This document shows positions 1 through 49,400 of a stretch of DNA of 64,000 nt, piece by piece. The stretch's first letter is position 1. The number at the start of each line of letters is the position of its first letter. The notes beneath the pieces are model-generated. The model did no database searches, had not been told where the DNA came from, and worked only from the letters and a program-made list of their open reading frames with translations. A program made the position numbers and the translations under genes. The stretch spans positions 124,001 through 188,000 of the IMG/VR virus record IMGVR_UViG_3300031344_000002; one strand, given 5' to 3'.

Positions 1-21
1 GAAAGTAATTTTAATAAGACC

Positions 22-17058: not shown

Positions 17059-18537
17059 ATGCAAAAAATGAAAACAAAAAAATTATTGTCAACTATTATG
17101 GGAATTATTATTACATTGATTGTATTAATCACATGTAAAAAAGATGATTTTAAAGAAATTGTTGGTACGTGCCCCCAATCACAAATAGAATTTACTGTTG
17201 CATTATCATCAAAACCTCTTGCTGGCGGAACAACAATTGGTGATGGAACATTTCCTAAAGATTCATCGATAACTGTTGCTGCAACTCCAAATACTGGATA
17301 TGTTTTTACTAATTGGACAAATGAAGCAACAATTGTTTCAACAAGTTCAAGTTATACATTTACTTTAACAAAAAATACAACATTAATTGCCAACTTTACT
17401 CCTGTAATTGCTGGAAATTTTGCTGTTATATTATCATCAAAACCTCTTGCTGGCGGAACAACAAATGGTGGTGGTTCATTTCTTGCTGGTTCTTCAGTAA
17501 CAATTAATGCAATACCAAATATTAATTATAAGTTTATTAATTGGACAAAAGGAACAACTATTGTTTCCGTAACCCCTAGTCATACGTTTATTTTAACAAA
17601 AGATACAACATTAATTGCAAATTTTTTACTTAATGCATATACATTAAATGTTACCGCAGTTAATGGTAGTGTCACAAAAACTCCCAATCAATTTACGTAT
17701 AATAGTGGTACTTCGGTTATCCTTATACCTATTCCTGCTTTAGGATATGTATTTAATTCTTGGAGTGGTGATGCAAGTGGTAATATAAATCCTTTAAATA
17801 TTACTATGAATTCTAATAAGAATATTATAGCTAATTTTACTGCAATTATTATTATTTGCCCTACAATTATTGATTTAGGATTATCAGGTAACTTTGCAAT
17901 ATTTGCAGAATCTGGAATTTCAACCACTGGTGTTACTTTAATTACAGGCGATATTGGAGTAAATCCTGTGACATCTACATCAATAACTGGATTTGGATTA
18001 ATTCTTCCAGCAGGTAGTGCATTTTCAACATCAAGTCTTGTTGCCGGAAAAATTTATGCTCCTGATTATGCTTCACCTTCACCTGCTAACATGGTAACCA
18101 CAAGTGGCAATATGCATACAGCATATACAACTGCAAATGGTTTAGTTGTTCCAGCACCTGTTAATGAATTCATGGCTGGTAATCTTAATGGTCAAACTTT
18201 AACTAAAGGTATTTACAAATGGAGTTCTGGCGTTTCAATAACAAATGGTATTGTATTGGATGGTGGTGGTGATAATTGTGCAACATTCATATTCCAAATA
18301 GCTAAAGACCTTACAGTAGCAAATAGTGCAATTATTACATTACAGAATGGTGCTCAAGCAAAGAATATATTTTGGATAGTTGCTGGTAGTGGTGCAATTT
18401 TAGGAACAAACGTTAATTTTAGTGGAAATATTTTATGTAAGACATTGATTTCAGTGAATACTGGTAGTAAAGTTACTGGTAGATTGCTTGCTCAAACGGC
18501 AGTTACATTAAATGCGGTAACAATAGTTAAACCATAA
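17059..18537 (+). CDS. ice-binding family protein (DUF3494) lipoprotein with Listeria-Bacteroides/InlB-B repeats
   Basis: LITC lipobox; three A.P..GY.F..W repeats; C-terminal FAIFAESGIST..ITGDIG..GIYKW..FIFQI..NIFW..GRLLAQTAVTL. Confidence 0.9.
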   Translation: MQKMKTKKLLSTIMGIIITLIVLITCKKDDFKEIVGTCPQSQIEFTVALSSKPLAGGTTIGDGTFPKDSSITVAATPNTGYVFTNWTNEATIVSTSSSYTFTLTKNTTLIANFTPVIAGNFAVILSSKPLAGGTTNGGGSFLAGSSVTINAIPNINYKFINWTKGTTIVSVTPSHTFILTKDTTLIANFLLNAYTLNVTAVNGSVTKTPNQFTYNSGTSVILIPIPALGYVFNSWSGDASGNINPLNITMNSNKNIIANFTAIIIICPTIIDLGLSGNFAIFAESGISTTGVTLITGDIGVNPVTSTSITGFGLILPAGSAFSTSSLVAGKIYAPDYASPSPANMVTTSGNMHTAYTTANGLVVPAPVNEFMAGNLNGQTLTKGIYKWSSGVSITNGIVLDGGGDNCATFIFQIAKDLTVANSAIITLQNGAQAKNIFWIVAGSGAILGTNVNFSGNILCKTLISVNTGSKVTGRLLAQTAVTLNAVTIVKP

Positions 18538-18567: not shown

Positions 18568-19863
18568 ATGAAAACAAATATTATAAAGAAAATTTTTAAC
18601 ATTAAAACACTTACATTATGTATTTTAATGTTGATTGGTACAAATCTTCAATCACAAGAAAACCAGATAAATAAAAATGCTCAAAATTATGTAGATACTA
18701 CATTAACAAGAAAAGATACAATACCATCATGGTGGTTTGGTGCTGCTGTTGGTGGAAATTTAAATTATTACCGTGGTTCAACCCAAAATGTGAATGCTAA
18801 TTTATTTTCATATCCTGCTTTCCATAATGGTAATGGTATAGGATTATATATTGCACCTGTTGTTATATTTCATAATCCCGAAAAAGTTTTTGGTGGTATG
18901 TTCGAATTAGGATATGATAACCGTAAAGGTAAATTTAATGAAGTAACAACTCCATGTAATTGTCCTGCAGATTTAAAAACAAATTTAAGTTATATAACAA
19001 TTGAACCAAGTATACATATGACACCATTTAAAGGTAATTTTTATTTATTTGCCGGTCCTCGTATGGGAATTACAATCGGAAAATCATTTGTATATAATAA
19101 AGGTAAAAGTGTTGATGGATTAATACCAGCAGAACCTCAATTAAAAGGTAATTTTACTAATATGTATGAAGCAGTAATATCTATGCATATTGGTGCTGGA
19201 TATGATATTATACTTACATCAAATTTTAATGATAGTATTAAAGGTAGTAAAGAAGGTCGAAAATATAATGAAATGGTATTATCGCCATTTATAGATTTCC
19301 ATCCATACTTTGGTCAGAATCCACGCACAATTGAAACATGGAATCTAACTACAATTAGAATAGGTGCAGTACTTAAATTTGGTCATGTAAAGATTCAAGC
19401 AAAAACAAGACCAATTATAATACCAGTTTCTGATACAATAATACCAGTTCCTGTTCCTGTTGTTGTTATACCTGTTATTATAGTTGTTCCAGAACCAATA
19501 AAAATTACTACGGCATATACTTTATATTTCAAATTTGATGAATCAAACCTTGATAATCAAACAATTAATTATTTAGATAATTTAATTAATGATTTGAAAA
19601 AAGATACAACAATTGGTATTCAAATTAAATCATATGCAGATATGAGAGGAACTGAAGATTATAATATAAGTCTTTCAGAAAGACGTGGTAAAGCAGTTGT
19701 TGATTACATGATTAGTAAGGGTATTGATATATCAAGAATTAACTCAACAGCTTATGGTAAAACAAAAATATTTAATGAATATAAAGAAAGTACTAATGAA
19801 ATTGAATACGCATTAAATCGTAGGTCTAATATAATAGTAATTGGTATTGCAAGTAAAAAATAA
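18568..19863 (+). CDS. OmpA-family outer membrane protein (beta-barrel plus OmpA_C)
   Basis: signal peptide; YFKFDES, YADMRG..YN..LSERRG.AV, LNRRS motifs. Confidence 0.9.
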   Translation: MKTNIIKKIFNIKTLTLCILMLIGTNLQSQENQINKNAQNYVDTTLTRKDTIPSWWFGAAVGGNLNYYRGSTQNVNANLFSYPAFHNGNGIGLYIAPVVIFHNPEKVFGGMFELGYDNRKGKFNEVTTPCNCPADLKTNLSYITIEPSIHMTPFKGNFYLFAGPRMGITIGKSFVYNKGKSVDGLIPAEPQLKGNFTNMYEAVISMHIGAGYDIILTSNFNDSIKGSKEGRKYNEMVLSPFIDFHPYFGQNPRTIETWNLTTIRIGAVLKFGHVKIQAKTRPIIIPVSDTIIPVPVPVVVIPVIIVVPEPIKITTAYTLYFKFDESNLDNQTINYLDNLINDLKKDTTIGIQIKSYADMRGTEDYNISLSERRGKAVVDYMISKGIDISRINSTAYGKTKIFNEYKESTNEIEYALNRRSNIIVIGIASKK

Positions 19864-23445: not shown

Positions 23446-24825
23446 ATGAAAATTAAACAGATTTTTGACGAAATTGCTAATGAATCGAGTACTAATGAGA
23501 AGATGAATATCCTTTCAAAGTATAAAGATAATGAACTTTTAGTACGAGTATTATATTTAGCTAATTCAAAACGAATTAAGTTCTATATTAAGCAAATTCC
23601 TTCACATTCTGGAAGTTTAAAAATGTCATTAACTGGTGCGCTAGATTTGTTGTCGACTTTGAGTGATAGAAGTGTTACTGGTTATGATGCAATAGCACAT
23701 TTAATAAATATACTTAATTCAGTTGACCCCGATGATGGATATATTATTGAACGTATTATTGAAAAGGATTGCAAAATTGGTATGGGAACTAGAAATATCA
23801 ATAAGGTGATTCCTGATTTAATAGAACGAACTGGTTATATGGGTTGTAAGCCATATTCAAAGGAATTAATTAATAAATTGTTAGCTAAAGGTACTTGTTA
23901 TAGTCAAGAAAAAATGGATGGTAGATTTGTTAATATTATTATTCAAGGTGGAGAAGTATTGAATGAATCTCGTCAAGGTGAACCAACATTATTAGATAAT
24001 CCAGCATTTATGCAGGAATTAACGCAATTAAAAGATTGTGTATTGAATGCTGAATTAACTATGGGCAAATACAATGGAATTCCAATTTCACGCTATGAAA
24101 GTAATGGAATTATTGCATCTTTAATAAGTATAGCCAATAAAAAATCTGCTGGCGATGATGTTACAAAAGATATTCAAAAACTTGAAGCTAAACATTTACC
24201 ATATAGAGAAGCATTAGATTTAATTCGAGTTACTGCTTGGGATATTTTAACTATTGATGAATATTTTACAAGGAAATGTAATAGGAAATATAAAGAAAGA
24301 TTTGTAGATTTAAATTCAACCTTACAAGGATTTAAAATGTTATCGGTTGTTGAAACTAGAGAAGTTTCTACCATTGAAGAAGTAATGGCACATTTTAATG
24401 AAATTGTTTCTCGTGGTAATGAAGGTACTGTCGTTAAAAGTATGGATGGAGTATGGGCAGATACAAAACCTTCATATCAAGTGAAAATTAAACTGGAAAT
24501 TAATTTAGATTTAAAAATTGTTGGATTTAATTATGGAACAGGAAAGAATTTAAAACTGATTTCATCACTTAATGTTGAATCCGAAGATGGTTTATTAAAA
24601 ACTTCACCAACCGGAATAAATGAAGATGATATGGAATATATTACCACTAATCAAGATAAATTATTAAATACAATTGTTGAAGTTAAATGTTCTGGTTTGT
24701 CACAAGATAGTAGGGGAAATTATTCAGCACTTCATCCTGTTTTTAAATTACTTAGAACAGATAAGACAATTGCCAATACATTAACAGAATGTATTGAAAT
24801 TAATAAATCCTCATCATTACTATAA
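23446..24825 (+). CDS. ATP-dependent DNA ligase (T4 gp30-like)
   Basis: QEKMDG motif I, EGTVVK, VKIK, C-terminal OB fold with HPVF..LRTDK. Confidence 0.92.
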   Translation: MKIKQIFDEIANESSTNEKMNILSKYKDNELLVRVLYLANSKRIKFYIKQIPSHSGSLKMSLTGALDLLSTLSDRSVTGYDAIAHLINILNSVDPDDGYIIERIIEKDCKIGMGTRNINKVIPDLIERTGYMGCKPYSKELINKLLAKGTCYSQEKMDGRFVNIIIQGGEVLNESRQGEPTLLDNPAFMQELTQLKDCVLNAELTMGKYNGIPISRYESNGIIASLISIANKKSAGDDVTKDIQKLEAKHLPYREALDLIRVTAWDILTIDEYFTRKCNRKYKERFVDLNSTLQGFKMLSVVETREVSTIEEVMAHFNEIVSRGNEGTVVKSMDGVWADTKPSYQVKIKLEINLDLKIVGFNYGTGKNLKLISSLNVESEDGLLKTSPTGINEDDMEYITTNQDKLLNTIVEVKCSGLSQDSRGNYSALHPVFKLLRTDKTIANTLTECIEINKSSSLL

Positions 24826-25675: not shown

Positions 25676-26680
25676 ATGAAAAGTTTTACTGAAATTGGTC
25701 AATATCGACAAGTAGTTAGAGAAGTTAAATCACATCATGATTATACTGGTAAAGATGAAAATGGCGATGCCATATATAGTCATACATCTCCATATCCAGT
25801 ATTAACATTTCGTGGTACAGTTAAATTGCATGGAACTAATAGTTCTATTGTTAAATACATTAATGATGGTCAGATTAAATATGATTTTCAAAGTAGAGAA
25901 AGAATAATAGATTTGACCGGAAAAGATGGGGATAATTGTGGTTTCATGAGAGAATTTCAAAAAAAAGATTATCAAAAACTTTTTGATGATATTGATTGTA
26001 AATCATCAATTGCAATTTTTGGCGAATGGTGTGGAAATGGTATTCAAAAGGGCGTTGCAATTGTAGAATTGCCAAAAATGTTTGTAATATTTGCGGTTAA
26101 AATCGATGATGTATATCAAGATATGAATAGCTTCAAACATTTAAAAAATGAAGAACAAAATATTTACAATATTTTACAATTTCCTACATTTTCAATTGAT
26201 ATTGATTTTAACAATCCTGAATTAATTCAAAATAAATTGGTTGAATTAACCACTAATGTTGAAAAAGAATGCCCTGTTGCTAAACAATTTGGTATTACTG
26301 GTATTGGAGAAGGAATTGTTTGGGAACACATCAATGGCAATGAAAGATATATTTTTAAAGTTAAAGGTGAAAAACATCAAAATAGTAAAGTAAAAACTCT
26401 CACAACAGTTAATGTTGAAGAAATTGAAAACATTAAAACATTTGTTGAATATGCAGTAACTGAAAATAGATTATTGCAAGGAATTGATAAAATGAGAGAA
26501 CTTGGTTTACCTATTGAAAGTAAAACCACTGGTGATTATTTAAGATGGGTTTATAATGATGTTATTAAAGAAGAAAGTGATACTATTGCAGAAAATAATA
26601 TTGATGTAAAGAAAATAGGTTCTGCAATTTCAGCAAAAGCCAGAATGTTTTGGTTAAATTATTTAAACACGCATTTATAA
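25676..26680 (+). CDS. RNA ligase, Rnl2 family
   Basis: VKLHGTN, QSR, FGEWCG, GEGIVW, FKVKGEKH. Confidence 0.88.
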   Translation: MKSFTEIGQYRQVVREVKSHHDYTGKDENGDAIYSHTSPYPVLTFRGTVKLHGTNSSIVKYINDGQIKYDFQSRERIIDLTGKDGDNCGFMREFQKKDYQKLFDDIDCKSSIAIFGEWCGNGIQKGVAIVELPKMFVIFAVKIDDVYQDMNSFKHLKNEEQNIYNILQFPTFSIDIDFNNPELIQNKLVELTTNVEKECPVAKQFGITGIGEGIVWEHINGNERYIFKVKGEKHQNSKVKTLTTVNVEEIENIKTFVEYAVTENRLLQGIDKMRELGLPIESKTTGDYLRWVYNDVIKEESDTIAENNIDVKKIGSAISAKARMFWLNYLNTHL

Positions 26681-40373: not shown

Positions 40374-41101
40374 ATGAAAAAATTTGAAGTAGAAGCAACT
40401 GGTCTAGTTTCTTTATTTATAGATAATATTGAAGCCGAAAATAAAGAAATCGCCAATGGAAAAGTATTAGAATTACTTGGGTGTGAACCCAATGAATTGG
40501 GTGGTTATTCTGTTACTTTCGAAAATTTAAGACTTCCAAATGGAATTGTTTTAGATGAATTAAGTATGTGTTTTAAAACATTTGTAGTCCCAGATGATAT
40601 CGTTAAAGATTTAAATGAATGTTTTAATACTGACGAAATTGAAGAAAATGATGATGTGTCATATAATTAAAATAATAATATGAATTTAGAAATTGGCGAT
40701 AAATTAAAATGTTTAAATTCAATATATAATATTTTTCAAAAACCATTATTCATTAAGAATTATATTTATGAAGTATTAGGTGTTGATGGAGATGAAATAA
40801 CATTGAATCATATATTATATGCTAATGAATATGATAGTTATAATATAAATTTTATTTTAGAAAATTTTGAAAAACAATAATTAATATTAAATAATAAAAT
40901 AATATGGAAATCGTAAAAGTTTATTCACCAATTGAAGACAAAAACATTCAAAAGAATCTTCAAGACTCACCAATTTGGAAGAATGCCCACCACTTTGATG
41001 AACTTACAGATACACAAATGAAATATGGAAATATGTTTGAGTATACCATAAAATTTTCTGGATTGCAGCCAGTAATGGTAACTAAAGTAAAGAAACTTTA
41101 G
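40374..41101 (+). other. three small hypothetical genes (40374-40670, 40680-40880, 40904-41101)
   Basis: tandem ORFs with AT-rich leaders. Confidence 0.5.
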
Positions 41102-41130
41102 AGTATTTATATATAGTAAAATTAAATACT

Positions 41131-41880
41131 ATGTATAAAGGTGTTATTTATTGTGCAATCTCTCCATCAAATAAAAAATATTATGGACTTACTTTAAATT
41201 TTTCAAGAAGAAAAAATGGTCATAAAAGATGTGCTGAATTTAAAAAATGTCGTTTTTATATTGCAATTAAAAAATATGGTTTTGATAATTTTATTTGGAA
41301 TATAATAGAAACACATGAAAATGAAAGTAAAGGGAATCTTCAAAATATTTTAAATGAAAGAGAAAAATATTGGATTGAAAAAGATAAAACATATTATTCT
41401 GAATTTGGATATAATATGACTCGTGGAGGTAATGGTGGTGATGCATTTACAAACAAATCTAATGAAGACAAGGAAAGAATACTTTTATGTAAAAGTAATA
41501 GATTTAGTGGTAAGAATAATCCAATGTATGGAAAAAAGGTTTATGATATTTGGTTAGAAAAATATGGAAAAGAAATTGCTGATGAAAAATTAATGGAAAG
41601 AAAAAAAAGAACAAGTAATTCGCTTAAAGGAAAAAGTCATCCTTGTTCAAATGAAACAAAAGAAAAAATAAGAAAAAAACTTTTAGGACATAAAATTTCG
41701 GAAATTTGTAGACAAAAACGTTTAGGCAAAAAAAATGCTGCTGGAAAAAGAAATGATGAATTTAAATTAAAAATGAGTATATCTCATAAGGGATTACCAT
41801 CACCAAGAAAGGGATGCCATCTTACAATTGAAACAAAAAGAAAAATTAGTGAATCAAAATTAAATAAAAAGATTAATTAG
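41131..41880 (+). CDS. GIY-YIG homing endonuclease with NUMOD3-type tail
   Basis: GVIYC..SPSNKKYYG.T, EKYWI, GYNMTRGG, GKNNPMYGK, ETKEKI/ETKRKISES repeats. Confidence 0.88.
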   Translation: MYKGVIYCAISPSNKKYYGLTLNFSRRKNGHKRCAEFKKCRFYIAIKKYGFDNFIWNIIETHENESKGNLQNILNEREKYWIEKDKTYYSEFGYNMTRGGNGGDAFTNKSNEDKERILLCKSNRFSGKNNPMYGKKVYDIWLEKYGKEIADEKLMERKKRTSNSLKGKSHPCSNETKEKIRKKLLGHKISEICRQKRLGKKNAAGKRNDEFKLKMSISHKGLPSPRKGCHLTIETKRKISESKLNKKIN

Positions 41881-42169
41881 TATTTATATTGAAATAATAT
41901 GAAAATAATATTCTATATGAATGAGGGTATTGAGAATTGTAATGTTCGCAATGTATTTTCTTATTTATGGATATTCAATGTCAAAAACCACAATTGAACC
42001 AAACCGTCCTGTTTGGGGATACATATGCACATTGGTATTTTCGATATTATCTATATGGGGCGTGGTAATTTTCATGGAAAATAATAAAAAAGATGAAAAG
42101 AACAAATGAATTTGTAACAATTTTTTCTAATTTTCGTATATGAACTATTAATTAATTAAATATAATATT

Positions 42170-42996
42170 ATGAAAAATAATGAAAAATTTACACCAAGAA
42201 TTAGCATGAAAGAACGTTGGTCATTAGAAGGTATGGCTAAAACGAACAAAATGACTGTTGAAGAATTCTTAGAAAATATCAAATTTCGGGAAGAATATAA
42301 ACAGAAATGTATTAAAAGTTTCATGGATAATGGTATGAATAGAGAAGGTGCTGAACTACAAACTATGAGAATGATGTATATTTGTGGATAAATTTATAAA
42401 ATAATTATGCATAAAAATTTTTTTAAATCTAATTCTGAACGTAATTTATGGATTAAATTAAATGCTGAACGCATTATGTATTCAAATCATGTTATCAATC
42501 CTGCACTAAATGAAGATATAGGGGGTGTTGATGAAATAGATACACCAATGTATATTTCAAGCAATCAATTGGGATATGATGAAAATGAACGTAATGTTCC
42601 TCGTTTTAGTTTTGAAGAACTTCTTTTACTTTCGCCAAATGATTTATTTAAACTTGCTAATGAAAGACATGGGATTAAAACGCAAGAATTCTCTGATATG
42701 AATGGACAACAGACCAAGTAAAACCAAAATAATTAAATTAATTAATACTTAATATTATGCTAAAAAATAAAAAGAATATTCTAAAGAAAATTGAAGAATT
42801 AAAGAAAATATATGAAATTAGACATCTATATGCAGGAACTTGTGGTATTAAATTGAATTGCGATTGTTGTGGTGGTGAAACACATAATGTTGAAAATCTT
42901 TATAATAAAGATTCTGAAAAGAAAGATGGAATTAATCTTTGTTTTGATTGTTCAATATTATGGAGAAATAATATTCCAATTAATGTTGTGGTTTAA
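42170..42996 (+). other. three small hypothetical genes (42170-42391, 42407-42721, 42757-42996)
   Basis: tandem ORFs; the last has CDCC..CFDC. Confidence 0.5.
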
Positions 42997-43050
42997 AATA
43001 ATATGATTATATTTGCAGTCTTAATTTTGTTTAACTAAAAACTTGAAGTC

Positions 43051-43992
43051 ATGAAAAAAAATAACTTAGTTCCAAATAAAGGTTTATCTCTTTCACAAGC
43101 ACAGTCAATTTCTAATCTTTGTAATCAAAGAGCAAATGAAATTGCTAATCAATTATCTGCTGTAAATAATTACAGTAAATCTGTAATGGTTGAAGGTAAA
43201 TCACATGAAACAGTTAAAGGTGTTAAACTTCCTGACGATGTTATTTCATTATTACAAGAAAAAGCAAAACTTCACTCTTGTCAGGCGTTTCTCATGGAAA
43301 ACATGAAAGCAAAAGAAAATTTGCTTAGTGTTGCAAAAAAAATTGCATATACTATACCTGATGGTTTAAAAAGTATTGCTCCTGAAAGACCTAAATTCGT
43401 TACTCCTATAATTTTATCACAAGTTAATGAAGAATTTGGTTGGGAACAACTTACTGCAGCCGAATATAATGAATATCTGGAAGCTGAAGCATATGCTTCA
43501 CACCTTGGTGAATTTATTCATAAAGGTTCAATTCTTGCAGGTTTACGTAATGAAATAAATAGTATTCCTTCAGTTGAATGGATGGTTATTAAAGGCGATG
43601 GAACTAAAACTCCTGTTGAAATAAAGGTGCATCACACTCCTGAACAACTTCTTACCATTCACGAAAAACTTGCTACAATACATCGTGCCTTCGAACAAAA
43701 TGTAAATTATTATAAAGCAAAAGTTAAAAATCTTACTACTGAAGAAAATGCACGTATTGCTAAACTTAATGCTGATGCTCAAAATGATGCAGAAAAAATT
43801 AACAATGACCTGCAACTTACTTACGATACTGCAATGAAAAAAGTGAGCGAAGCAATTAATACTGCTAAAGCTGAATTTGAAAAAGACCGTCAGGTAAAAA
43901 TTAAAGAAATTGCCAGTATGCGTATTGAAATCGATTTAAGATTTCAAGAAACAATTGATTTATTTTTAAATCAACTTCCAAAACAAGAATAA
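43051..43992 (+). CDS. coiled-coil-rich hypothetical protein immediately upstream of a structured RNA
   Basis: 313 aa, helical; own TAnnTTTG box at 43008. Confidence 0.7.
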   Translation: MKKNNLVPNKGLSLSQAQSISNLCNQRANEIANQLSAVNNYSKSVMVEGKSHETVKGVKLPDDVISLLQEKAKLHSCQAFLMENMKAKENLLSVAKKIAYTIPDGLKSIAPERPKFVTPIILSQVNEEFGWEQLTAAEYNEYLEAEAYASHLGEFIHKGSILAGLRNEINSIPSVEWMVIKGDGTKTPVEIKVHHTPEQLLTIHEKLATIHRAFEQNVNYYKAKVKNLTTEENARIAKLNADAQNDAEKINNDLQLTYDTAMKKVSEAINTAKAEFEKDRQVKIKEIASMRIEIDLRFQETIDLFLNQLPKQE

Positions 43993-44003
43993 AAATTTAA
44001 GGT

Positions 44004-44326
44004 GAAAGACAGATAGAGCACAAGCCGAGTTTGTTTTTCTTTGTATCATATGATGAGTTCTTTAATATATATGAAAAATTAACAACGTTAATTAGAAAAT
44101 GTCCCTTCGGGGGCGTTTCCGACATCTGAAAGTAAAATCGCTTCCTTTGCAAAAAAACAAGTTTTCTATGGGATTTTTACAAAACCACCATGACTACTAA
44201 CTAAGTTACCTTCGGGATAATTAGAGTAGGAAAACGACTTCGCTTTTGTCCTTGCCATTGTGCAATGGAAGGTCTGTAACTTTGGCGTTAACATTGATTT
44301 TATCTATATAAATTCATCATATGGTA
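44004..44326 (+). ncRNA. candidate structured non-coding RNA (~320 nt)
   Basis: long closing stem 44044-44059/44311-44326, two C(UUCG)G hairpins, several further stems with G-U pairs. Confidence 0.65.
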
Positions 44327-44359
44327 ACTTATTTTTAAATATTAAATAATAATAATATT

Positions 44360-45825
44360 ATGGGTATTAAACACGTAAGTTGGATGCCGGGATTTAATGG
44401 TGAACCCCCCAAACCAATGTATTATACAATTGGAATTACTGAAGAAATGTCTAATGCTGATTTAATGTGGCAAATTAGATGTTGTAAAGAACCGGGAAAA
44501 GTAGAATTAATAGCAGCATTTAAAGAAAGTAAAGACGCAGTATCTTATATGACATCTGTTATATTTAAAAATAATAAAAAAGATAATGAAACAATATTAG
44601 GCGGAAGTATTGAAGGATGTTCTTATTTTATTGAATATAATTCTTCAACCGAATATATGGTATTAACAACTTAGTGGTAAAAATTATGGATAGATTAGAA
44701 CAAATCGAAAAAGAAATTGAAATACTTGAAAATAAAGTAGATGAAAAGAATAAAATTTGGGATGATAAATTCAGAAGTAAACTTTCTTGGGATGAATATC
44801 AAATGTATATGTTCAAAGAATGGAAAGCAATTGCCAAATTAGATAGAGAAAGACGAATGATAATGCCATATAAACTATCTGAATTACCAAATTATGGCGA
44901 TGTAATGTCTTTAAATGATTTTATTAAATGTGTTAAATGTGGCGGATTTATTGATTATGATGGTTTTGGCAATTATGTTAAAGATGGTAAAGAAACTGAC
45001 ATTGTAATACAGCCAAGTGATGTTAAATATAAAGCAATTAGAAAAGATTTTGATACAATAATTTGGTATAATAGATAATATTATGATAACAAAAATAAAA
45101 GAAATTATTAATAGTGCTAATGATAAAAAATCATTAATTTCTGAAAAATTTGATAATTCTAATAGGACAATTTCTAATATAGCTGAATACTATATGGATA
45201 ATTCTAATGCATTTATTGAATTACTTGGAGATTTAAATAAAATATTGGATAAAGATGAATCATATTGTACTTGTGGAAATCCAAGTAAAGAAGGTAATTG
45301 TCATTTTGAAGGTGATGAAAATTTAATATATTGTTGTGCTGATTGTGGTAAACAAGTGAAAGATAACGAAAAATTTAGTGATGATGAAAATTAAAAAAGG
45401 GGATAAATTAAAATTATTTAATTTATTAATTAGTTTTGGTTTTATTAAACATATAACTCAACATTATATAATGTTTATAAAAGATAAACAACTTTTAATT
45501 TATCCTAAAGGTAAATTAAATATTCAACATTTTGAATCAGCAAGACATCAATTAGATATGAATGGTCATATAAATAAAAGAGAATTTGCTTTAATGTTTA
45601 ATTTTTTAATTAAATGAAATTATGAAAGTAGAAACACAAGTTCACATCTATGTGATAGATGGTAAAGAAACTAAAGTAGGTGACAACAAAATTCTTAATG
45701 TTAGAAATGTTTGGAACAGAAACCAATTAGTAGAAATACAGATTGGTGAGAATGGAGAAAAGGTTGTCGTTCATGAAGTTGATTTAATTAAGGCAATTAG
45801 TAATGCAACAGGTAATGAACGATAG
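44360..45825 (+). other. run of small hypothetical genes (44360-44674, 44674-45078, 45083-45394, 45378-45617, 45622-45825)
   Basis: tandem ORFs. Confidence 0.5.
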
Positions 45826-45850
45826 ATATAAATAATTTAATAAATAAATT

Positions 45851-46405
45851 ATGATATTTGAAATAATTCCAAATCAGCAAACTCCATGTATATTCGAACT
45901 TGTTCATGATTTCGAAGCCAATAAAGAAATATTTAATACATTTCTCGAATTTGCTTCTAATCATCGCAATGCGGTTGGACTAGCAGCAAATCAATGTAGT
46001 ATTGATGGAGAAAGATTTATGCAAAATGTCTTTGCTCTTAGAAATTTAAAAATCAATACTTGGAAATTAATTATTAATCCAAAAATCGATTTATATTTTG
46101 GAATGGTTGAACCCAAACTTGAAGGTTGTCTTACTTGGGTAGGCAAATCTATTCTTGCTGATAGATTGCGTGCGGTTAAAGTTAGTTATGATGATATTGA
46201 TGGTAATCATTATACTAATCAAATTTATGGTGGTTTTGAAGCTCAAATCTGGCAACATGAGATTAATCATCTTAATGGTATTGAAGAAAATGTTGTCGAT
46301 TATAATTATAAATTACCACCAATAAAAAAGATTGAAAGAAATGATAAATGTCCTTGTCTTTCAGGTAAAAAATATAAAAACTGTTGTTTAATATTTGAAA
46401 GTTAA
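45851..46405 (+). CDS. def: peptide deformylase with C-terminal SEC-C motif
   Basis: GLAANQ, EGCL, QHEINHLNG; ERNDKCPCLSGKKYKNCC. Confidence 0.92.
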   Translation: MIFEIIPNQQTPCIFELVHDFEANKEIFNTFLEFASNHRNAVGLAANQCSIDGERFMQNVFALRNLKINTWKLIINPKIDLYFGMVEPKLEGCLTWVGKSILADRLRAVKVSYDDIDGNHYTNQIYGGFEAQIWQHEINHLNGIEENVVDYNYKLPPIKKIERNDKCPCLSGKKYKNCCLIFES

Positions 46406-46416
46406 AACAATTTATA

Positions 46417-49400
46417 ATGAGAAAACATACTATATTGATACAATATTTACGTAAATTGGGATTTATTATTGATATGCAACCAGATGAAACTGTTTGTACA
46501 CATGGAAATAATATAATTGTATTTAAACGTGGTAAATTAAGTGAACCGCATTATCAGGTAATTAAAACGCAATTGATGTATCAAGGTTATAAAATTCCTG
46601 ATTATGATTCATTATTTCTTACAGCAAAAAAATATAATAAATTCGTTTATGTTACGGTTGACCCCTTATTAGAAGAAGTGATTTGTGTTCATGCTAAACC
46701 AAATAAACTATGCTCTATATGTAATGACACATATTTTACCAGAATAAAAGAAGATTCATTTTATCTACTATATGAAAAAAAAATGTTAATTAGAACAAAT
46801 TTAATTATATTATGATAACAAAATTTGAATTAAACGAAAATGAGGCTAAAGCAGCAGAAGAATTTATTGCTAAATTGCCTAAGAAATATAAAAAAATGTC
46901 ACAAGAATTAATTATTACTTCTGGTGGTGGTATTGGTATTGGCGTAACAATTAGAGTTGGAGATAGAGAAAAAGATATAACTGATTATAATGCTTGGTAA
47001 TATGAAAAAACAAATAACAATTGATTTGGATTTAACTGAAGAACAAATATTAGAATTTATTTCAAATGAGTCAACAAATAATTATTCAATGTTTAAGATA
47101 GCGGATAAAGCATTGAGTGAAGTTAGTTGGCATAATAATATGCCCAAATCAAGTAAATTATACTATATCGCAATGTTACAAAAACACATCAATGCATTTT
47201 TAAAAGATATTGATTATAATAATGATTTAAATGTGTTATGATTTTGTAACATTTTTCATTAAATTTCGTATTAATGCTCATGATGATACCAAAAGAACAT
47301 ATTGAAAAGCAAAAGGAATTTGTAATGACTCTTCAAGATAGTAAATATCTTCATTATCGAGATATTTACAAAAATATTGATAAATACAATTTTCAAATTT
47401 GTACTAAAGTGGATTTTAAAGCTGTAGGAAATTCTTGCGGTGATATTTTTGAAACATGGGATAAGCTAAAACAAGCAAGTAAAATCACATATGAAGCCAA
47501 TACCAAATCAGGTAGTAGGTATTTTATTGATGAATACAATAATGTATATCGACTTTCAAATCATTGGGGTGCAGTTGCAACTTGTGAATGGACACGAGAA
47601 GGTAAAGGTCAATTAAGTATGTCTATTTTTGAAACAGGTGAATGGGAAATTGGTGTTGCTAATCTTAAAGATTTTAAAATATTTAGAAGAAAACAAGATA
47701 GAAATATAGATTTTATAATTAATCCTAAGTGGCTTAATCAAATGAAAGAAGTAATTCAACTAAAAAAGGAATTATTTAAATTAAAATCTTTACCAGAATT
47801 TAAAGAACTTCCTGTTGAAGATAAAATATTAATTGGAACTTCTTATCATTTTTTTAATAAAGAATTGGGTGGAATTGAAAAAAGAAAATGATAAAACAAA
47901 AAGAATTTATATTGTGTGCAGCTATTGATTATAATGGAACAATTATTTGTGGGCATAGACATAGTGATTGTTATTTTGTTTTAAAAGAATTAATAACGAA
48001 TCCAGTCTTACCACCTAGAGAAAAACAAGGTTTTCTTACTTCGAAAAATCGTTTTGTCAATAGAAGTGAAGCATGGAAAATAGCTAAAGAAAATAATCAA
48101 ATAAAATATGGTTATGATGCAAGTGAAAATGATGAAGATTCAATACTTATTTCTGAAAATTTATACTAAAATTTAATGTATGGGATGGCGACTTGAAATA
48201 AAAGATGAAAAATATCGTATCTATAGTACAGTAGTTGACGATTATATTTCTAATTATATGAATAAGAATGAATTAATTAGATTTTTATTTTGGCATAGAT
48301 TTGAAGAATTAATGAGAAAAATGTTAGAAGATATAATCATTTTTCCAAACAATTGGATAGATAAAGAAACTGAAAAATATTTAAATTGTGATGAAGAAAA
48401 ACGTAATGAATTCTTTACGATGCTAAATGATAGAAAAAAGGTATTTGAACAGTTTTTCACTAAAATAAAAGACGTGGGAATTGATATTTCGTTAAGTGAT
48501 ATTGATGGCGTTGATATACATACTAAAAAGTTAATATAACTTAATTGTTGTAACATTTTTAATTAATATTCGTATAATCATTTGTTATTAGTATTCACTA
48601 AAAAAGAAAGAAGATGAAAAAATTATTTAAAATCACAGTCTTATTAGTTGTTTTAGGAATTTTTGCATTCAGTTCAAATCCTATAATTACTAAGGTTAGA
48701 ACCTTTACTATTGAAAATGGCAAGAAAGCCTATGATTATTGCACTGGTTCGTTGAAAGAAAGTAAGAACGAAACTGTTAAGAAATACAGTTCAATAATTC
48801 TTTAATCTCAGAAATATGGTAAGAACTATAGAACAAATTAATGAGCAACTTGATAGAGTTGCAGAAGCCGAAAAGAATGGCGGAAAATATCATGGAATGA
48901 CCTATGAAGGAGGCGTAAAATACGCACTTGATTGGATATTAGGTAACAGTGAAGATGAACCAATGCCAAATGAAGAATAATTATGAAAAATTTAGCAGGA
49001 GATAAAGATGCAGACAAAATCGTAAGAGAAGAACTCTGGCTTGCTGACATACCAATGGAAAAAGAAATATCAAAAGGTGAAGTACCTTATAATACTATTG
49101 GTAAAATTGCTAATTGGACTTTTAGACGTGCATGGTATTATTGGATAGTCAATATACCTGATGGCGAAAAAGGTCTACCTTTAGCAATTGCAATGGAATT
49201 GCATCTGAGAAAAAATCCAACTGATGGCAATAAAATCATGGGTAATTCAATTAGATGTGGTGGTCATGCAGGTGCTCCTTCTCCTATAGAATATGGTTCT
49301 TATCCATTTTATGATGAAAAAGGTGAACCAACTATTGAACGTTATGTCAGTTCTTATCATGTTGATGACCAAATTGGTTTGAATATGTTAGCGGACGTGC

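Follow-up and report, generated by a model that had tools for sequence, protein, structure and literature searches.

What is encoded by the intergenic stretch that follows a 313-aa protein gene in an uncultured phage, and what might its product do? The window analysed here, i.e., the whole stretch of 64,000 nucleotides (positions 124,001 to 188,000 of IMG/VR record IMGVR_UViG_3300031344_000002), produces from its positions 43998-44336, plus strand, a structured non-coding RNA of ~340 nt. It represents a new and large RNA family without a match to known RNA families, and there is little doubt that the region is a real, expressed member of a new structured family. The original prediction, made from the sequence alone, had proposed a plus-strand RNA of no recognised type, co-transcribed with a coiled-coil gene. 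This overall interpretation is supported, with caveats concerning one hairpin, the co-transcription and the coiled-coil label.

A structured non-coding RNA of the plus strand

The plus strand folds with -83.5 kcal/mol (z = -3.39), an energy equalled by none of 100 shuffled sequences, while the minus strand gives a weaker z of -2.47. In the supported helices of the alignment, G-U or U-G combinations occupy 192 cells as opposed to 7 cells with A-C or C-A, which indicates that the plus strand is the RNA strand. The region is non-coding: across the members, the longest open reading frames encode 27-79 aa and differ in strand and position, and the member lengths are spread over all three classes modulo 3, with 1-nt indels within the periodic region. 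Coding potential of the hexamer region was considered for either strand and rejected on the grounds of these indels and the lack of a conserved ORF.

The search of the whole window with Rfam 15 in gathering mode gave zero matches; in E-value mode the best score in 43900-44420 was 15.3 bits, compared with gathering thresholds of 35 to 80 bits. For 20 other members, Rfam 15 in gathering mode gave no match on the RNA, the only matches being to tRNAs elsewhere in locus L070. The families covered by this search include tmRNA, RNase P, 6S, SRP, group I/II introns, GOLLD, ROOL and HEARO, as well as raiA, pRNA, self-cleaving ribozymes and riboswitches. ARAGORN detected no tRNA or tmRNA in the window.

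The fold was inferred by comparing the window RNA with 46 relatives (47 distinct members gathered by a DNA pattern scan), using RNAalifold and our own controls, namely 300 shuffles and slid-partner pairings. The consensus comprises 50 pairs, 41 of which show compensatory changes. The 5' and 3' ends are brought together by P0 and the 14-bp P2, with H1 branching off at a basal three-way junction; the interior is made up of a second rod (P3 and junction helices), tipped by the arms P4 and P5, and of a variable region (Table 1). Covariation is strong in four helices, H1, P2, P3 and P4, where 97-99% of the cells are paired and all 300 shuffles and all slid controls are exceeded; P5 and the junction helix covary too.

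Table 1. Features of the partner gene and the RNA (window coordinates)
Feature	Position	Strand	Remarks
TAtaTTTG box	43008-43015	+	35 nt upstream of the 313-aa ATG; Bacteroidota-type -7 element
313-aa conserved phage protein gene	43051-43992	+	ORF; partner of the RNA
P0, 5' strand UAAG	43998-44001	+	pairs with CUUA 44328-44331, bringing 5' and 3' ends together
H1 hairpin	44004-44039	+	11-bp stem 44004-44014/44029-44039
H1 interior			conserved 3x3 purine-rich internal loop; GC/GC tip, ACAA loop (AGAGCACAAGCCGAG)
P2 closing helix	44044-44057/44313-44326	+	14 bp
Junction strand GUUCUUUAAUAUAUAU	44057-44072	+	conserved; boxA-like in near clade
Variable region	44073-44133	+	window hairpins 44077-83/44087-93 and 44097-105/44110-118 (UUCG loop)
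AAUUAAC/GUUAAUU stem	44077-83/44087-93	+	within variable region
AAAUGUCCC-UUCG-GGGGCGUUU hairpin	44097-44118	+	within variable region
P3 long-range helix	44141-44150 (CUUCCUUUGC)/44262-44271 (GCAAUGGAAG)	+	10 bp
Junction helix	44161-44167 (GUUUUCU)/44229-44235 (GGAAAAC)	+	
P4 hairpin (AUGG...CCAU)	44168-44191	+	conserved bulged A
P5 arm	44194-44229	+	outer CUACU/AGUAG, then CUAA/UUAG; variable tip (UUCG)
CUACU...AGUAG	44194-44229	+	encloses CUAAGUUACC-UUCG-GGAUAAUUAG
P5 internal loop UAAGUUAC/GAUAAUUA	44202-09/44216-23	+	near-invariant
First hexamer run	44236-44261	+	after invariant GAC; GACUUC GCUUUU GUCCUU GCCAUU G
Local hairpin CCUUGCCAUU-GUGC-AAUGGAAGG	~44250-44272	+	originally predicted; not conserved
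Hexamer array	44272-44309	+	unpaired; ends in invariant CUAUAU
P0, 3' strand CUUA, straight into U-tract (UUAUUUUUAA)	44328-44338	+	

In H1, ten of the 11 stem pairs carry compensatory changes in at least 10 sequences each, 97.7% of the cells are paired, and covariation amounts to 0.73, compared with values that do not exceed 0.42 for shuffles and 0.30 for slid partners; the C-G pair of the tip is replaced by U-A in 3 members. P2 shows double changes at 13 of its 14 pairs (99.2% of cells paired, covariation 0.60 vs. at most 0.37 in shuffles), P3 compensatory changes at all 10 pairs (99.4%, 0.67 vs. at most 0.40), and P4, with 7 pairs, reaches 97.3% and 0.42 (vs. at most 0.23), its column pair 256/269 being C-G in 26 cases and U-A in 21. 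As to P0, columns 6/455 are G-C in all 47 members, columns 5/456 are A-U in 39, G-C in 4 and G-U in 4, and columns 4/457 are A-U in 44, G-C in 2 and U-A in one. Some members (L007, L011, L013) have an extended form of this helix, the distant clade only a short, weak one; an invariant G-A juxtaposition (44002/44327) adjoins it.

The equivalent of the junction helix in most members is AAAACCAA-UA-GUCUU with AAGAC-UUGG-A-UUUU, and duplexes computed for each sequence show CCAA/UUGG replaced by CUAA/UUAG, CAAA/UUUG or UUAA/UUAG. The outer helix of P5 changes in sequence with pairing kept (GUGG/CCAC, GUAGUA/UACUAU, CCUUA/UAAGG, GUGCA/UGCAC), and in the distant clade UAAG...UUA of this arm becomes CAAG...UUG, which is again compensatory. 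The junction strand is highly conserved (G64 100%, U65 96%, U66 100%, C67 96%, UUU 91-98%), and its AUAUAG may pair with CUAUAU at 44304-09. Candidate pseudoknots are the pairing of CAAG in the H1 loop with CUUG and that of GUU in UAAGUUAC with the invariant GAC. The variable region differs between members in both length and sequence, often carrying one to three UUCG-capped hairpins.

Every stem listed in the original prediction is present in the window sequence, and those corresponding to H1, P2, the junction helix and the P5 arm proved to be conserved and covarying among the 46 relatives; the assignment to the plus strand was likewise borne out by the G-U excess. The two hairpins placed at 44077-44118 exist in the window, while other members have different hairpins there. 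The local CCUUGCCAUU/AAUGGAAGG hairpin is present in the sequence but failed the conservation analysis: the pairing CCTTGCCATT/AATGGAAGG is not conserved, and its 3' arm pairs with 44141-44150 instead, forming the long-range P3. The claim that the RNA belongs to no known family held (Rfam 15 matches on 0 of 21 members, ARAGORN negative), and the loose 6-nt periodicity turned out to be real and family-wide, with G-N-C-N-U-U units.

These units constitute the hexamer array, which reads GUCUUU GACCUU GACGUU GGUUUU GACUUC GACUAU AU in the family and is degenerate in the window (GUCUGU AACUUU GGCGUU AACAUU GAUUUU AUCUAU AU). G is found at columns 398, 404, 410, 416 and 422 in 100, 97, 93, 91 and 85%, C is located two positions after G, and UU stands ahead of each G; GUCUUUG (columns 398-404) is invariant, and 4-5 related units come after it. 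RNAalifold proposes only 3 bp within the array, without compensatory change. In the distant clade the array is the best conserved portion, recognisable even in L266 and L269. The first hexamer run also has G every 6 nt (columns 367, 373, 379 and 385; 100, 100, 97 and 100%); its beginning supplies, in most members, the junction helix with its 3' strand, and the remainder is an asymmetric bulge.

At the 3' end, nearly all members of the near clade have ACUU with 5-8 U behind it. The end has not been mapped, and we infer that it is likely to be formed at the U-tract by intrinsic termination. A simple terminator scan found no terminator at this place, owing to the long-range nature of the terminator stem.

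The partner gene, distribution and expression

The 313-aa protein has more than 2000 homologs at E<=0.001, falling into 713 clusters at 50% identity. It belongs to no Pfam or PHROG family, the same searches with ten distant homologs being equally uninformative; nothing informative was obtained from the PDB sequence search, VIA-align wide or ESM Atlas, and the structural model has no fold match in Foldseek comparisons with PDB, BFVD and AFDB clusters. The AF2 model (pLDDT 83) combines helices with a beta-hairpin, and the family has many invariant His, Cys and Glu residues. With its pI of ~6-7 the protein is without a recognisable RNA-binding fold. The coiled-coil label of the original prediction thus held only in part, as the protein is not simply a coiled coil.

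In a protein-first sample of 80 IMG/VR loci containing homologs of this protein, the RNA lies downstream on the same strand in 78; of the remaining two, one is truncated and the other has an inserted gene with the RNA after the insert. In these loci the linkage holds down to 47% protein identity, and very distant homologs have gaps of ~300 and ~350 nt behind the gene with the same RNA hallmarks. The family now counts roughly 130 or more members. The RNA usually starts 3-12 nt past the stop codon of the partner gene, and in many members a hairpin overlaps this codon. In L005, a 468-aa RHS-repeat gene is located between the partner gene and an intact RNA, and inserts of 200-600 nt are present at this place in other members. 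The predicted protein-plus-RNA unit is therefore upheld, and the check that had been proposed for it, namely an analysis of the regions downstream of homologs for covariation, found these regions both conserved and covarying.

The TAtaTTTG box is inferred to be the promoter of the 313-aa gene; the pattern TTTG-N19-TAnnTTTG(CAGTC) is kept upstream of the gene in eight further loci (L003, L005, L007, L191, L193, L196, L207, L209). The phage fragment encodes a sigma factor, and no RNA polymerase beta homolog was found in it, from which we conclude that the phage relies on the host polymerase. Co-transcription of gene and RNA from the box at 43008, as originally proposed, fits the promoter, the short gap and the U-tract; it remains inferred, since no transcript bridging the gene and the RNA was seen. 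The genes downstream of the RNA vary between loci and often carry a promoter-like motif of their own; the 104-aa protein encoded downstream in the window has no relatives in IMG/VR. A riboswitch or leader acting on the downstream genes was rejected because of this variation.

The RNA is confined to uncultured phages, many of them on contigs of 320-675 kb, and the RNA or its partner come from peat, permafrost, lake, rhizosphere, soil and sediment samples. Many of these phages, including that of the window, have Bacteroidota-type promoters. Across 185,579 bacterial and archaeal species (one genome each) only two true matches were found, both on phage-like MAG contigs, and GenBank phages (INPHARED) gave no match to either the RNA DNA or the 313-aa protein. 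Across deep divergence the RNA is single-copy and keeps a fixed position. In part of the distant clade a direct repeat, AAAAUAAUU, occurs on both sides of the RNA. In L070, tRNA genes are located 1-2 kb downstream of the RNA.

Expression is evidenced by RNA contigs from three peat metatranscriptome runs, covering 44015-44216, 44080-44255 and 44023-44188 with 98.8-99.4% identity to the window (1-2 differences each). In the same runs no other contig of at least 31 nt fell within 41000-46999, the flanks of the RNA and the ORF being absent. The contigs provide neither strand information nor ends, and carry-over of DNA is unlikely, though not formally excluded. A C>T strain variant at 44123 is seen in the RNA contigs.

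In the peat metatranscriptome run X18, a 335-nt RNA contig of a relative has this relative's own P2 3' strand, followed by A-CUA-UUUUU, immediately before its 5' start. This head-to-tail junction hints at a possible circularisation of the RNA; it rests on one assembled contig only, and raw junction reads were not counted. The DNA of this relative was not found among the gathered loci or in IMG/VR. Tandem DNA copies as the source of the contig were considered and rejected: the 47 member loci contain none (one pattern match each), and the sole match of the IMG/VR scan was a false positive inside a coding gene. The window also encodes an RNA-ligase-family protein (25676-26680).

What the RNA may do

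Our preferred proposal, to which we assign a probability of about 40% and which could thus well be wrong, is that the RNA works in trans, serving as a scaffold or decoy to which protein binds; it is inferred, without any binding data. The RNA would be transcribed together with the upstream gene from the promoter of that gene, its 3' end would form at the U-tract past P2/P0, and it would then be freed from the mRNA part, or outlast it, and accumulate as a stable RNA. The unpaired array of ~5-6 overlapping G-N-C-N-U-U-G units would be the functional core, each unit being occupied by one subunit of a protein whose binding site on single-stranded RNA measures ~6-7 nt, and the remaining fold would present the array and shield the ends. 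Host cold-shock proteins are the leading named candidate for binding, because the invariant first unit, GUCUUUG, coincides with the published optimal heptamer of a cold-shock-domain protein (PMC1904285); the 313-aa protein is the other candidate. In the consensus of CspB, 5'-GTCTTTG/T-3', position 3 is preferentially C, and positions 2, 4 and 6 favour T (PMC1904285). As far as sequence is concerned, the criterion for binding of such proteins, i.e., unpaired pyrimidine-rich heptamers close to GUCUUUG/U, is met, again in the absence of binding data. Array units 2-5 have A, not U, at position 2, and their position 4 is variable. The match is a single 7-mer, noticed after many known motifs had been considered, and the 218-kb phage fragment contains no cold-shock-domain gene. 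What speaks against the scaffold or decoy is the fold itself, which with its ~50 invariant or near-invariant positions exceeds the needs of a simple sponge; such an elaborate fold could also be compatible with a ribozyme or a larger ribonucleoprotein.

The RNA might instead be a cis-acting 3' untranslated element, i.e., a large terminator and stabiliser that guards the mRNA of a highly expressed phage gene against 3' exonucleases or sets its decay and has no independent life. This reading is favoured by the start of the RNA a few nt past the stop codon and its end in a U-tract, by its constant position behind one gene with a hairpin over the stop codon in many members, and by the varying downstream genes, often with promoter-like motifs of their own. 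Still, we consider it unlikely: the (near-)invariant positions, the internal loop and the unpaired array go far beyond what a stabiliser needs, the RHS-repeat gene of L005 and the 200-600 nt inserts separate the gene from the RNA, and the RNA contigs span the RNA, not the ORF. Nor is a catalytic or self-processing RNA, perhaps circularised by itself or by the phage RNA ligase, a likely explanation, although large RNAs with many invariant junction nucleotides often are ribozymes, P0 and P2 place the 5' and 3' ends side by side, an RNA-ligase-family protein is encoded in the window, and the X18 contig joins the 3' end to the 5' start in the absence of detectable tandem DNA copies. However, this contig is a single one, from a relative only; a rare template switch of reverse transcriptase could be assembled, since the ends of linear RNAs are dead ends in the assembly graph; and no known self-cleaving motif of Rfam 15 matches. 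A bolder variant, also improbable, is that the RNA is cut or terminated from the transcript and its ends, kept close by P0 and P2, are ligated, giving a circle whose multiple sites trap some abundant protein of the host that binds single-stranded RNA. If true, this would be the first case of a DNA phage that encodes a circular non-coding RNA; the molecule would be exonuclease-proof and long-lived, and its target in these phages of cold soils, peat and sediments might be, e.g., the cold-shock proteins.

Antitermination of the nut/put kind, in which the boxA-like GUUCUUUAACA would load NusB/S10 or bind polymerase for downstream read-through, seems very improbable. The boxA of lambda nut and rrn, approximately GCUCUUUAACA, is bound by NusB/S10, and lambda nutR, too, follows the first gene of its operon. 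In favour of this idea, GGUUCUUUAACA agrees with the E. coli consensus UGCUCUUUAACA (PMC13753749) at 10 of 12 positions, and the phage uses the host polymerase; in the near clade GUUCUUUWACA has >90% conservation, NusB/S10 binding data being unavailable. We downgraded the idea because the motif degenerates and disappears in the distant clade, which has GGUUUUAAAU, GAUUUAAAUAU and similar in its place. In addition, the 9-mer is frequent in this genome, the window alone containing 12 copies, a promoter-like motif stands straight after the RNA in many members, the RNA ends in a U-tract and accumulates without flanks, and boxA needs no 340 nt of conserved structure; the position criterion (start of a long operon, acting on downstream terminators) is not met either. 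As for a DNA-level element (origin, packaging site, mobile element) or a small protein gene, they are largely ruled out. One could take the long inverted repeat and the hexamer repeats for DNA signals, the AAAAUAAUU direct repeat surrounds the RNA in part of the distant clade, and the hexamers in one frame resemble alternating codons (GUC UUU GAC CUU ...). Against a DNA element stand the 192 to 7 ratio of G-U to A-C, the existence of RNA contigs, the constancy of copy number (one) and position even between deeply diverged members and the absence of a GC-skew turn here, and against a small gene the lack of a conserved ORF, lengths that are not multiples of three and the 1-nt indels in the periodic region.

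Likeness to known systems and significance

GOLLD and ROOL are large ornate non-coding RNAs, often found in phages or prophages and having no known function. The new RNA resembles them as a large multi-helix phage-borne RNA with many conserved positions, found comparatively and visible in RNA data; unlike them, it matches no Rfam model, is at most half their size, accompanies a single protein gene instead of tRNA clusters, and has the unpaired hexamer array. With CsrB/RsmZ, which act on CsrA, and 6S, which acts on RNA polymerase, it would share the proposed mode of action, in which a stable RNA offers repeated or mimicking sites to a protein abundant in the host (without binding data so far), and, as in protein-sponge RNAs, a repeated short motif is its most conserved feature. 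However, this motif is G-N-C-N-U-U in an unpaired run instead of GGA in hairpin loops, the fold is large, conserved and tertiary-looking, and there is no homology. The phi29 pRNA is also a phage-encoded stable structured RNA, which works with phage proteins and not as a regulator of a neighbouring gene; the new RNA differs from it in size and fold, has no Rfam match and shows no link to packaging genes. Lambda nut, rrn boxA and HK022 put are similar in their position behind the first gene of a unit and in the boxA-like 11-mer of the near clade, but here the motif is not family-wide, and the RNA is about five times larger and accumulates alone. Archaea have circular non-coding RNAs made by RNA ligases, and the likeness to them consists in the terminal helix that keeps the ends together, the one 3'-to-5' contig and the RNA-ligase-family gene in the same phage; to our knowledge, no circular non-coding RNA is known from a DNA phage.

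Several further candidates were rejected. For a retron msr-msd, the inverted repeat (P2) is present, but the 218-kb phage record has no RVT_1 match, and no reverse transcriptase gene was found beside the RNA in any locus examined. A telomerase-like template is contradicted by the lack of a reverse transcriptase and of other hexamer arrays in the same record. The TnpB/IscB omega RNA or another guide RNA does not agree with an upstream protein that has no Pfam/PHROG family and no nuclease fold match. Type III antitoxin RNAs consist of ~34-36 nt tandem repeats upstream of the endoribonuclease toxin gene, whereas the repeats described here are 6 nt long, lie inside a larger fold and belong to an RNA that follows its partner gene rather than precedes it.

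Bacteria and phages have few RNAs that exceed 300 nt and possess a complex, conserved fold, and where the function of such RNAs became known, they proved to be ribozymes or core ribonucleoproteins. Protein-RNA gene pairs of such kind are unusual in phages. The RNA described here is abundant in nature, with more than 2000 protein partners recorded, belongs specifically to one clade of giant phages, all uncultured, and is locked to one conserved protein without known function. It is also tractable: it is compact, its domains are clearly delimited, and it offers both a candidate array for protein binding and a candidate circular form. If the RNA does trap a host RNA-binding protein, it would represent a new route by which phages seize the gene expression of their hosts.

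Fold and conservation of the RNA

Directly behind the gene of the 313-aa protein lies the sequence of a structured RNA that is new, expressed, specific to phages and tied to this one protein gene. All the stems listed in the original prediction are present, and the plus strand folds with an energy of -83.5 kcal/mol (z = -3.39), matched by 0 of 100 shuffles; for the minus strand z = -2.47. In an alignment of 47 distinct members (pairwise identity 53-96%; window versus others 53-84%) RNAalifold found 50 pairs, 41 of them with sequences changed on both sides and the pair kept. The covariation of the helices was compared with that of 300 shuffles and of slid partners (see the table). Since the supported helices contain 192 G-U/U-G cells versus 7 A-C/C-A cells, the RNA is read from the plus strand, as had been predicted. 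The RNA region contains no conserved ORF on either strand.

Window coordinates of the RNA elements, the partner gene and other genes, with helix controls
Feature	Position (strand)	Cells paired, %	Covariation	Best shuffle	Best slid	Remark
H1, 5' hairpin	44004-14/44029-39	97.7	0.73	0.42	0.30	
P0, short outer helix	43998-44001/44328-31					followed by U-tract
P2, closing helix	44044-57/44313-26	99.2	0.60	0.37	0.17	
P3, long-range helix	44141-50/44262-71	99.4	0.67	0.40	0.27	
P4, arm	44168-91	97.3	0.42	0.23	0.12	
P5, arm	44194-44229					outer helix kept through many sequence changes
Partner ORF, 313 aa	43051-43992 (+)					
Next ORF	44360-44674					gap of 367 nt after partner ORF
GIY-YIG/NUMOD3 homing endonuclease	41131-41880 (+)					free-standing, ~1.2 kb upstream of partner gene; Pfam, PHROG 314
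Phage peptide deformylase with C-terminal SEC-C motif	45851-46405 (+)					downstream of the RNA, a few small genes away; conserved in several relatives (L003:4533-5087; L005:5783-6343)
Protein with Listeria-Bacteroides repeats and ice-binding-like domain	17059-18537 (+)					
OmpA-domain protein	18568-19863 (+)					next after ice-binding-like gene
ATP-dependent DNA ligase	23446-24825 (+)					
RNA-ligase-family (PF09414) protein	25676-26680 (+)					

As to the individual predicted elements, the local hairpin CCUUGCCAUU/AAUGGAAGG failed as a conserved element, having no consistent register in other members, and its 3' arm is used in the long-range helix P3. The junction helix GUUUUCU/GGAAAAC has in most members a longer, interrupted equivalent (AAAACCAA-UA-GUCUU with AAGAC-UUGG-A-UUUU), which covaries as well. 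Two further predicted hairpins, in 44073-44133, belong to the variable region of the family. The internal loop of P5, UAAGUUAC/GAUAAUUA, is near-invariant, and at one pair of this arm U...A becomes C...G in the distant clade (the more diverged members). P0 and an invariant G-A juxtaposition hold the RNA ends together.

The predicted 6-nt periodicity was confirmed, G recurring every 6 nt from an invariant GAC (44236) to an invariant CUAUAU (44304-09). Part of the first hexamer run (G in 100, 100, 97 and 100% of members at alignment columns 367, 373, 379 and 385) serves as the 3' strand of the junction helix, and the remainder forms an asymmetric bulge. The second (columns 398, 404, 410, 416 and 422; G in 100, 97, 93, 91 and 85%) has UU ahead of each G and C two positions after it; its consensus, GUCUUU GACCUU GACGUU GGUUUU GACUUC GACUAU, stays single-stranded in the consensus fold. 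At 47% protein identity no other part of the RNA is as well conserved as this array, which persists in the most distant gaps behind partner homologs.

No Rfam 15 model matched any of 21 members, and the window itself matched no known family at gathering score, E-value mode yielding chance-level matches only; no tRNA or tmRNA was found. The original prediction, according to which this is not a tRNA and not recognisable as tmRNA, RNase P or a group I intron, thus stands. Given the lack of an Rfam match, of any description in the literature searched and of any annotation of the partner protein wherever we examined it, the RNA very likely represents a new class, although absence from Rfam and the open-access literature is no proof that it has not been described before.

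Linkage to the partner gene, distribution and expression

A similar sequence lies downstream in each of five IMG/VR loci whose homologs of the 313-aa protein are 59-87% identical to it. Regions downstream of such homologs, whose inspection had been proposed with the prediction, were then sampled protein-first: among 80 IMG/VR loci (homologs at 47-87% identity) the RNA lay downstream on the same strand in 78 (nhmmer E values between 6e-9 and 1e-95). The exceptions were the record of locus L005, whose RNA lies further away than the 1500-nt flank, and a locus that is cut off 124 nt past the gene. As a rule the RNA begins within 10-60 nt of the stop codon; about ten loci have it 200-600 nt further on. 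In L005 the gene of a 468-aa RHS-repeat protein (L005:4014-5420) is inserted between the partner gene and the RNA, which begins right at the stop codon of the inserted gene; since it is intact despite the insertion, the RNA constitutes a separate unit. After two very distant homologs (profile E about 1e-27) come gaps of ~300 and ~350 nt that the HMM no longer recognises; both combine a 5' hairpin with a long closing helix and have a run of G-N-C-U-U-U hexamers towards the 3' end, and one also begins with AAGGUG.

A search pattern derived from the best conserved stretches revealed two further phage records and, in JGI metagenomes, at least 120 stretches, about 45 of them distinct true members and the remainder chance matches. 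Among bacterial and archaeal genomes (one per species, 185,579 species) there were only two true matches, a 362,763-bp contig (L147, JBAZIW010000001.1) binned into a 'Candidatus Paceibacterota' MAG and a 3-kb contig (L170) of a 'Gammaproteobacteria' MAG; both are likely to be mis-binned phage, and the size of the former matches that of RNA-bearing phage genomes. No relative was found among GenBank phages. A direct repeat, AAAAUAAUU, borders the RNA in its 5' leader and its 3' trailer in the distant clade (e.g. L243, L244, L247, L221, L233); it may have arisen by chance, the DNA being AT-rich, or be left over from an old insertion. Locus L070 carries four tRNA genes 1-2 kb downstream of the RNA (L070:485-1373, minus strand), and in L258 the 3' end of a tRNA gene sits just upstream of the partner gene.

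Homologs of the partner protein number more than 2000 at 90% clustering (713 clusters at 50%); they measure ~310 aa throughout, and no fusions were found among them. The protein belongs to no Pfam or PHROG family and has no named fold relative, solved or predicted. Its AF2 model is confident (pLDDT 83) and consists of long helices and two beta-hairpins. The invariant residues C24, H75, C77, H151, H157, H194, H195, H204, H211 and several Glu suggest a metal site, and the pI of 5.5-7.2 is atypical for an RNA-binding protein.

As for expression, RNA runs found by an index search with 2 kb contained 5-6% of the sampled words, a share that rose to 17-40% in the same peat metatranscriptomes when the query was the RNA alone. 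Three of these runs (X18, X24, X25) contain one contig each, 166-202 nt long and differing at 1-2 positions (98.8-99.4% identity); aligned to window 42800-44800 and 41000-46999, all lie within the RNA (44015-44216, 44080-44255 and 44023-44188) and have C>T at 44123 in common, while the rest of the 6 kb is represented only by stray pieces of 18-26 nt. DNA carry-over is an unlikely source, because the flanks serve as a silent control. A fourth run contains a 170-nt contig within a neighbouring ORF, so that run, too, shows the phage. These contigs carry no strand or end information.

Transcription unit and phage context

The predicted TAnnTTTG box is present at 43008-43015, and at least eight relatives conserve, ahead of their partner gene, the arrangement TTTG-N19-TAnnTTTG, a promoter layout of the Bacteroidota housekeeping type. 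The spacing between gene and RNA is in most members too short for a promoter. Co-transcription, as predicted, with termination after P2/P0 is the simplest reading, inferred without direct evidence. In many members a promoter-like TGTAAC...CGTATAAT lies just after the U-tract. In many near-clade (closer) members (e.g. L052, L060, L066, L083, L120, L128) a conserved promoter-like TGTAACA-N-TTTTCGTATAAT, of a promoter type different from the TAnnTTTG box, follows the U-tract closely and precedes the next gene. In most of the near clade (e.g. L025, L052, L083; weakly in window 43975-43992) a hairpin, CUUCCUGA-NNN-UCAGGAAU, overlaps the final codons (L-P-D/E-x-x-E) and stop codon of the partner gene, immediately ahead of the RNA. 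This hairpin could have a role in processing, could mark the 3' end of the mRNA, or could simply reflect codon conservation.

The source, an IMG/VR virus record of 218,381 bp with ~26% G+C whose bases 124001-188000 make up the window, is estimated to be 66% complete, and contigs of relatives measure 320-375 kb, up to 675 kb. The last ~80 bases of the source record are filled with tandem 12-nt repeats (TAGTGTATTGCC and variants), the probable cause of the assembly break. The window encodes, among others, a DNA ligase, an RNA-ligase-family protein, an SF1 helicase, an AAA ATPase and a GIY-YIG homing endonuclease. In a phage of cold soils and peat the ice-binding fold is noteworthy. The record encodes a sigma-70-family factor, and neither an RNA polymerase beta homolog nor a reverse transcriptase was found in it; lacking the former, the phage probably redirects the host polymerase. 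The sigma-70 region 2 match is outside the window (G000:C1:114017-114214 of the full record), within a 206-aa open frame.

Proposed function and rival readings

We favour the reading that the RNA may act in trans as a stable protein binder, its unpaired hexamer array being the putative working part; this is inferred in the absence of binding data, and at a probability of about 0.4 it falls short of even odds. The period of 6 and the overlapping G-N-C-N-U-U-G heptamers fit proteins whose subunits each bind 6-7 nt of single strand.

A cis-acting stabiliser or terminator, serving the transcript presumably shared with the partner gene, is improbable for an RNA that stands as its own unit in L005. 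Even less credible is a nut-like signal: the boxA-like GUUCUUUAACA agrees with the E. coli boxA consensus at 10 of 12 positions (PMC13753749) and is present in the near clade, but, unlike the hexamer array, it is lost in the distant one. The reading as a ribozyme or circular RNA, also unlikely, touches on a 335-nt contig of a relative's RNA from X18, about one RNA unit long and aligned to window 44000-44042. The 28 letters ahead of its 5' start read AAC-GCAUUGCUAUCA-A-CUA-UUUUU-CAUU, where GCAUUGCUAUCA complements the P2 5' strand of the same relative (one G-U included) and the letters after it follow the family's 3' end pattern; hence the contig joins the 3' end of the RNA to its 5' start. 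It may represent either an RNA circle or a template-switch chimera that was assembled, resting as it does on a single contig without raw-read evidence. Tandem DNA copies were rejected as its source (one copy in each of the 47 member loci; the IMG/VR scan gave a false match only). The PF09414 RNA-ligase-family protein would be relevant if the RNA were circularised.

Returning to the trans-acting protein binder, the invariant first unit of the array, GUCUUUG, coincides exactly with the optimal site reported for CspB of B. subtilis, 5'-GTCTTTG/T-3', which has C at position 3 and T at 2, 4 and 6 (PMC1904285). Later units depart from it and the array of the window itself is degenerate, so that a cold-shock site is no more than possible, by resemblance and without binding data. 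As no cold-shock-domain gene was found in the phage fragment, the target would be a host protein; alternatively, the RNA may be bound by the co-encoded 313-aa protein.
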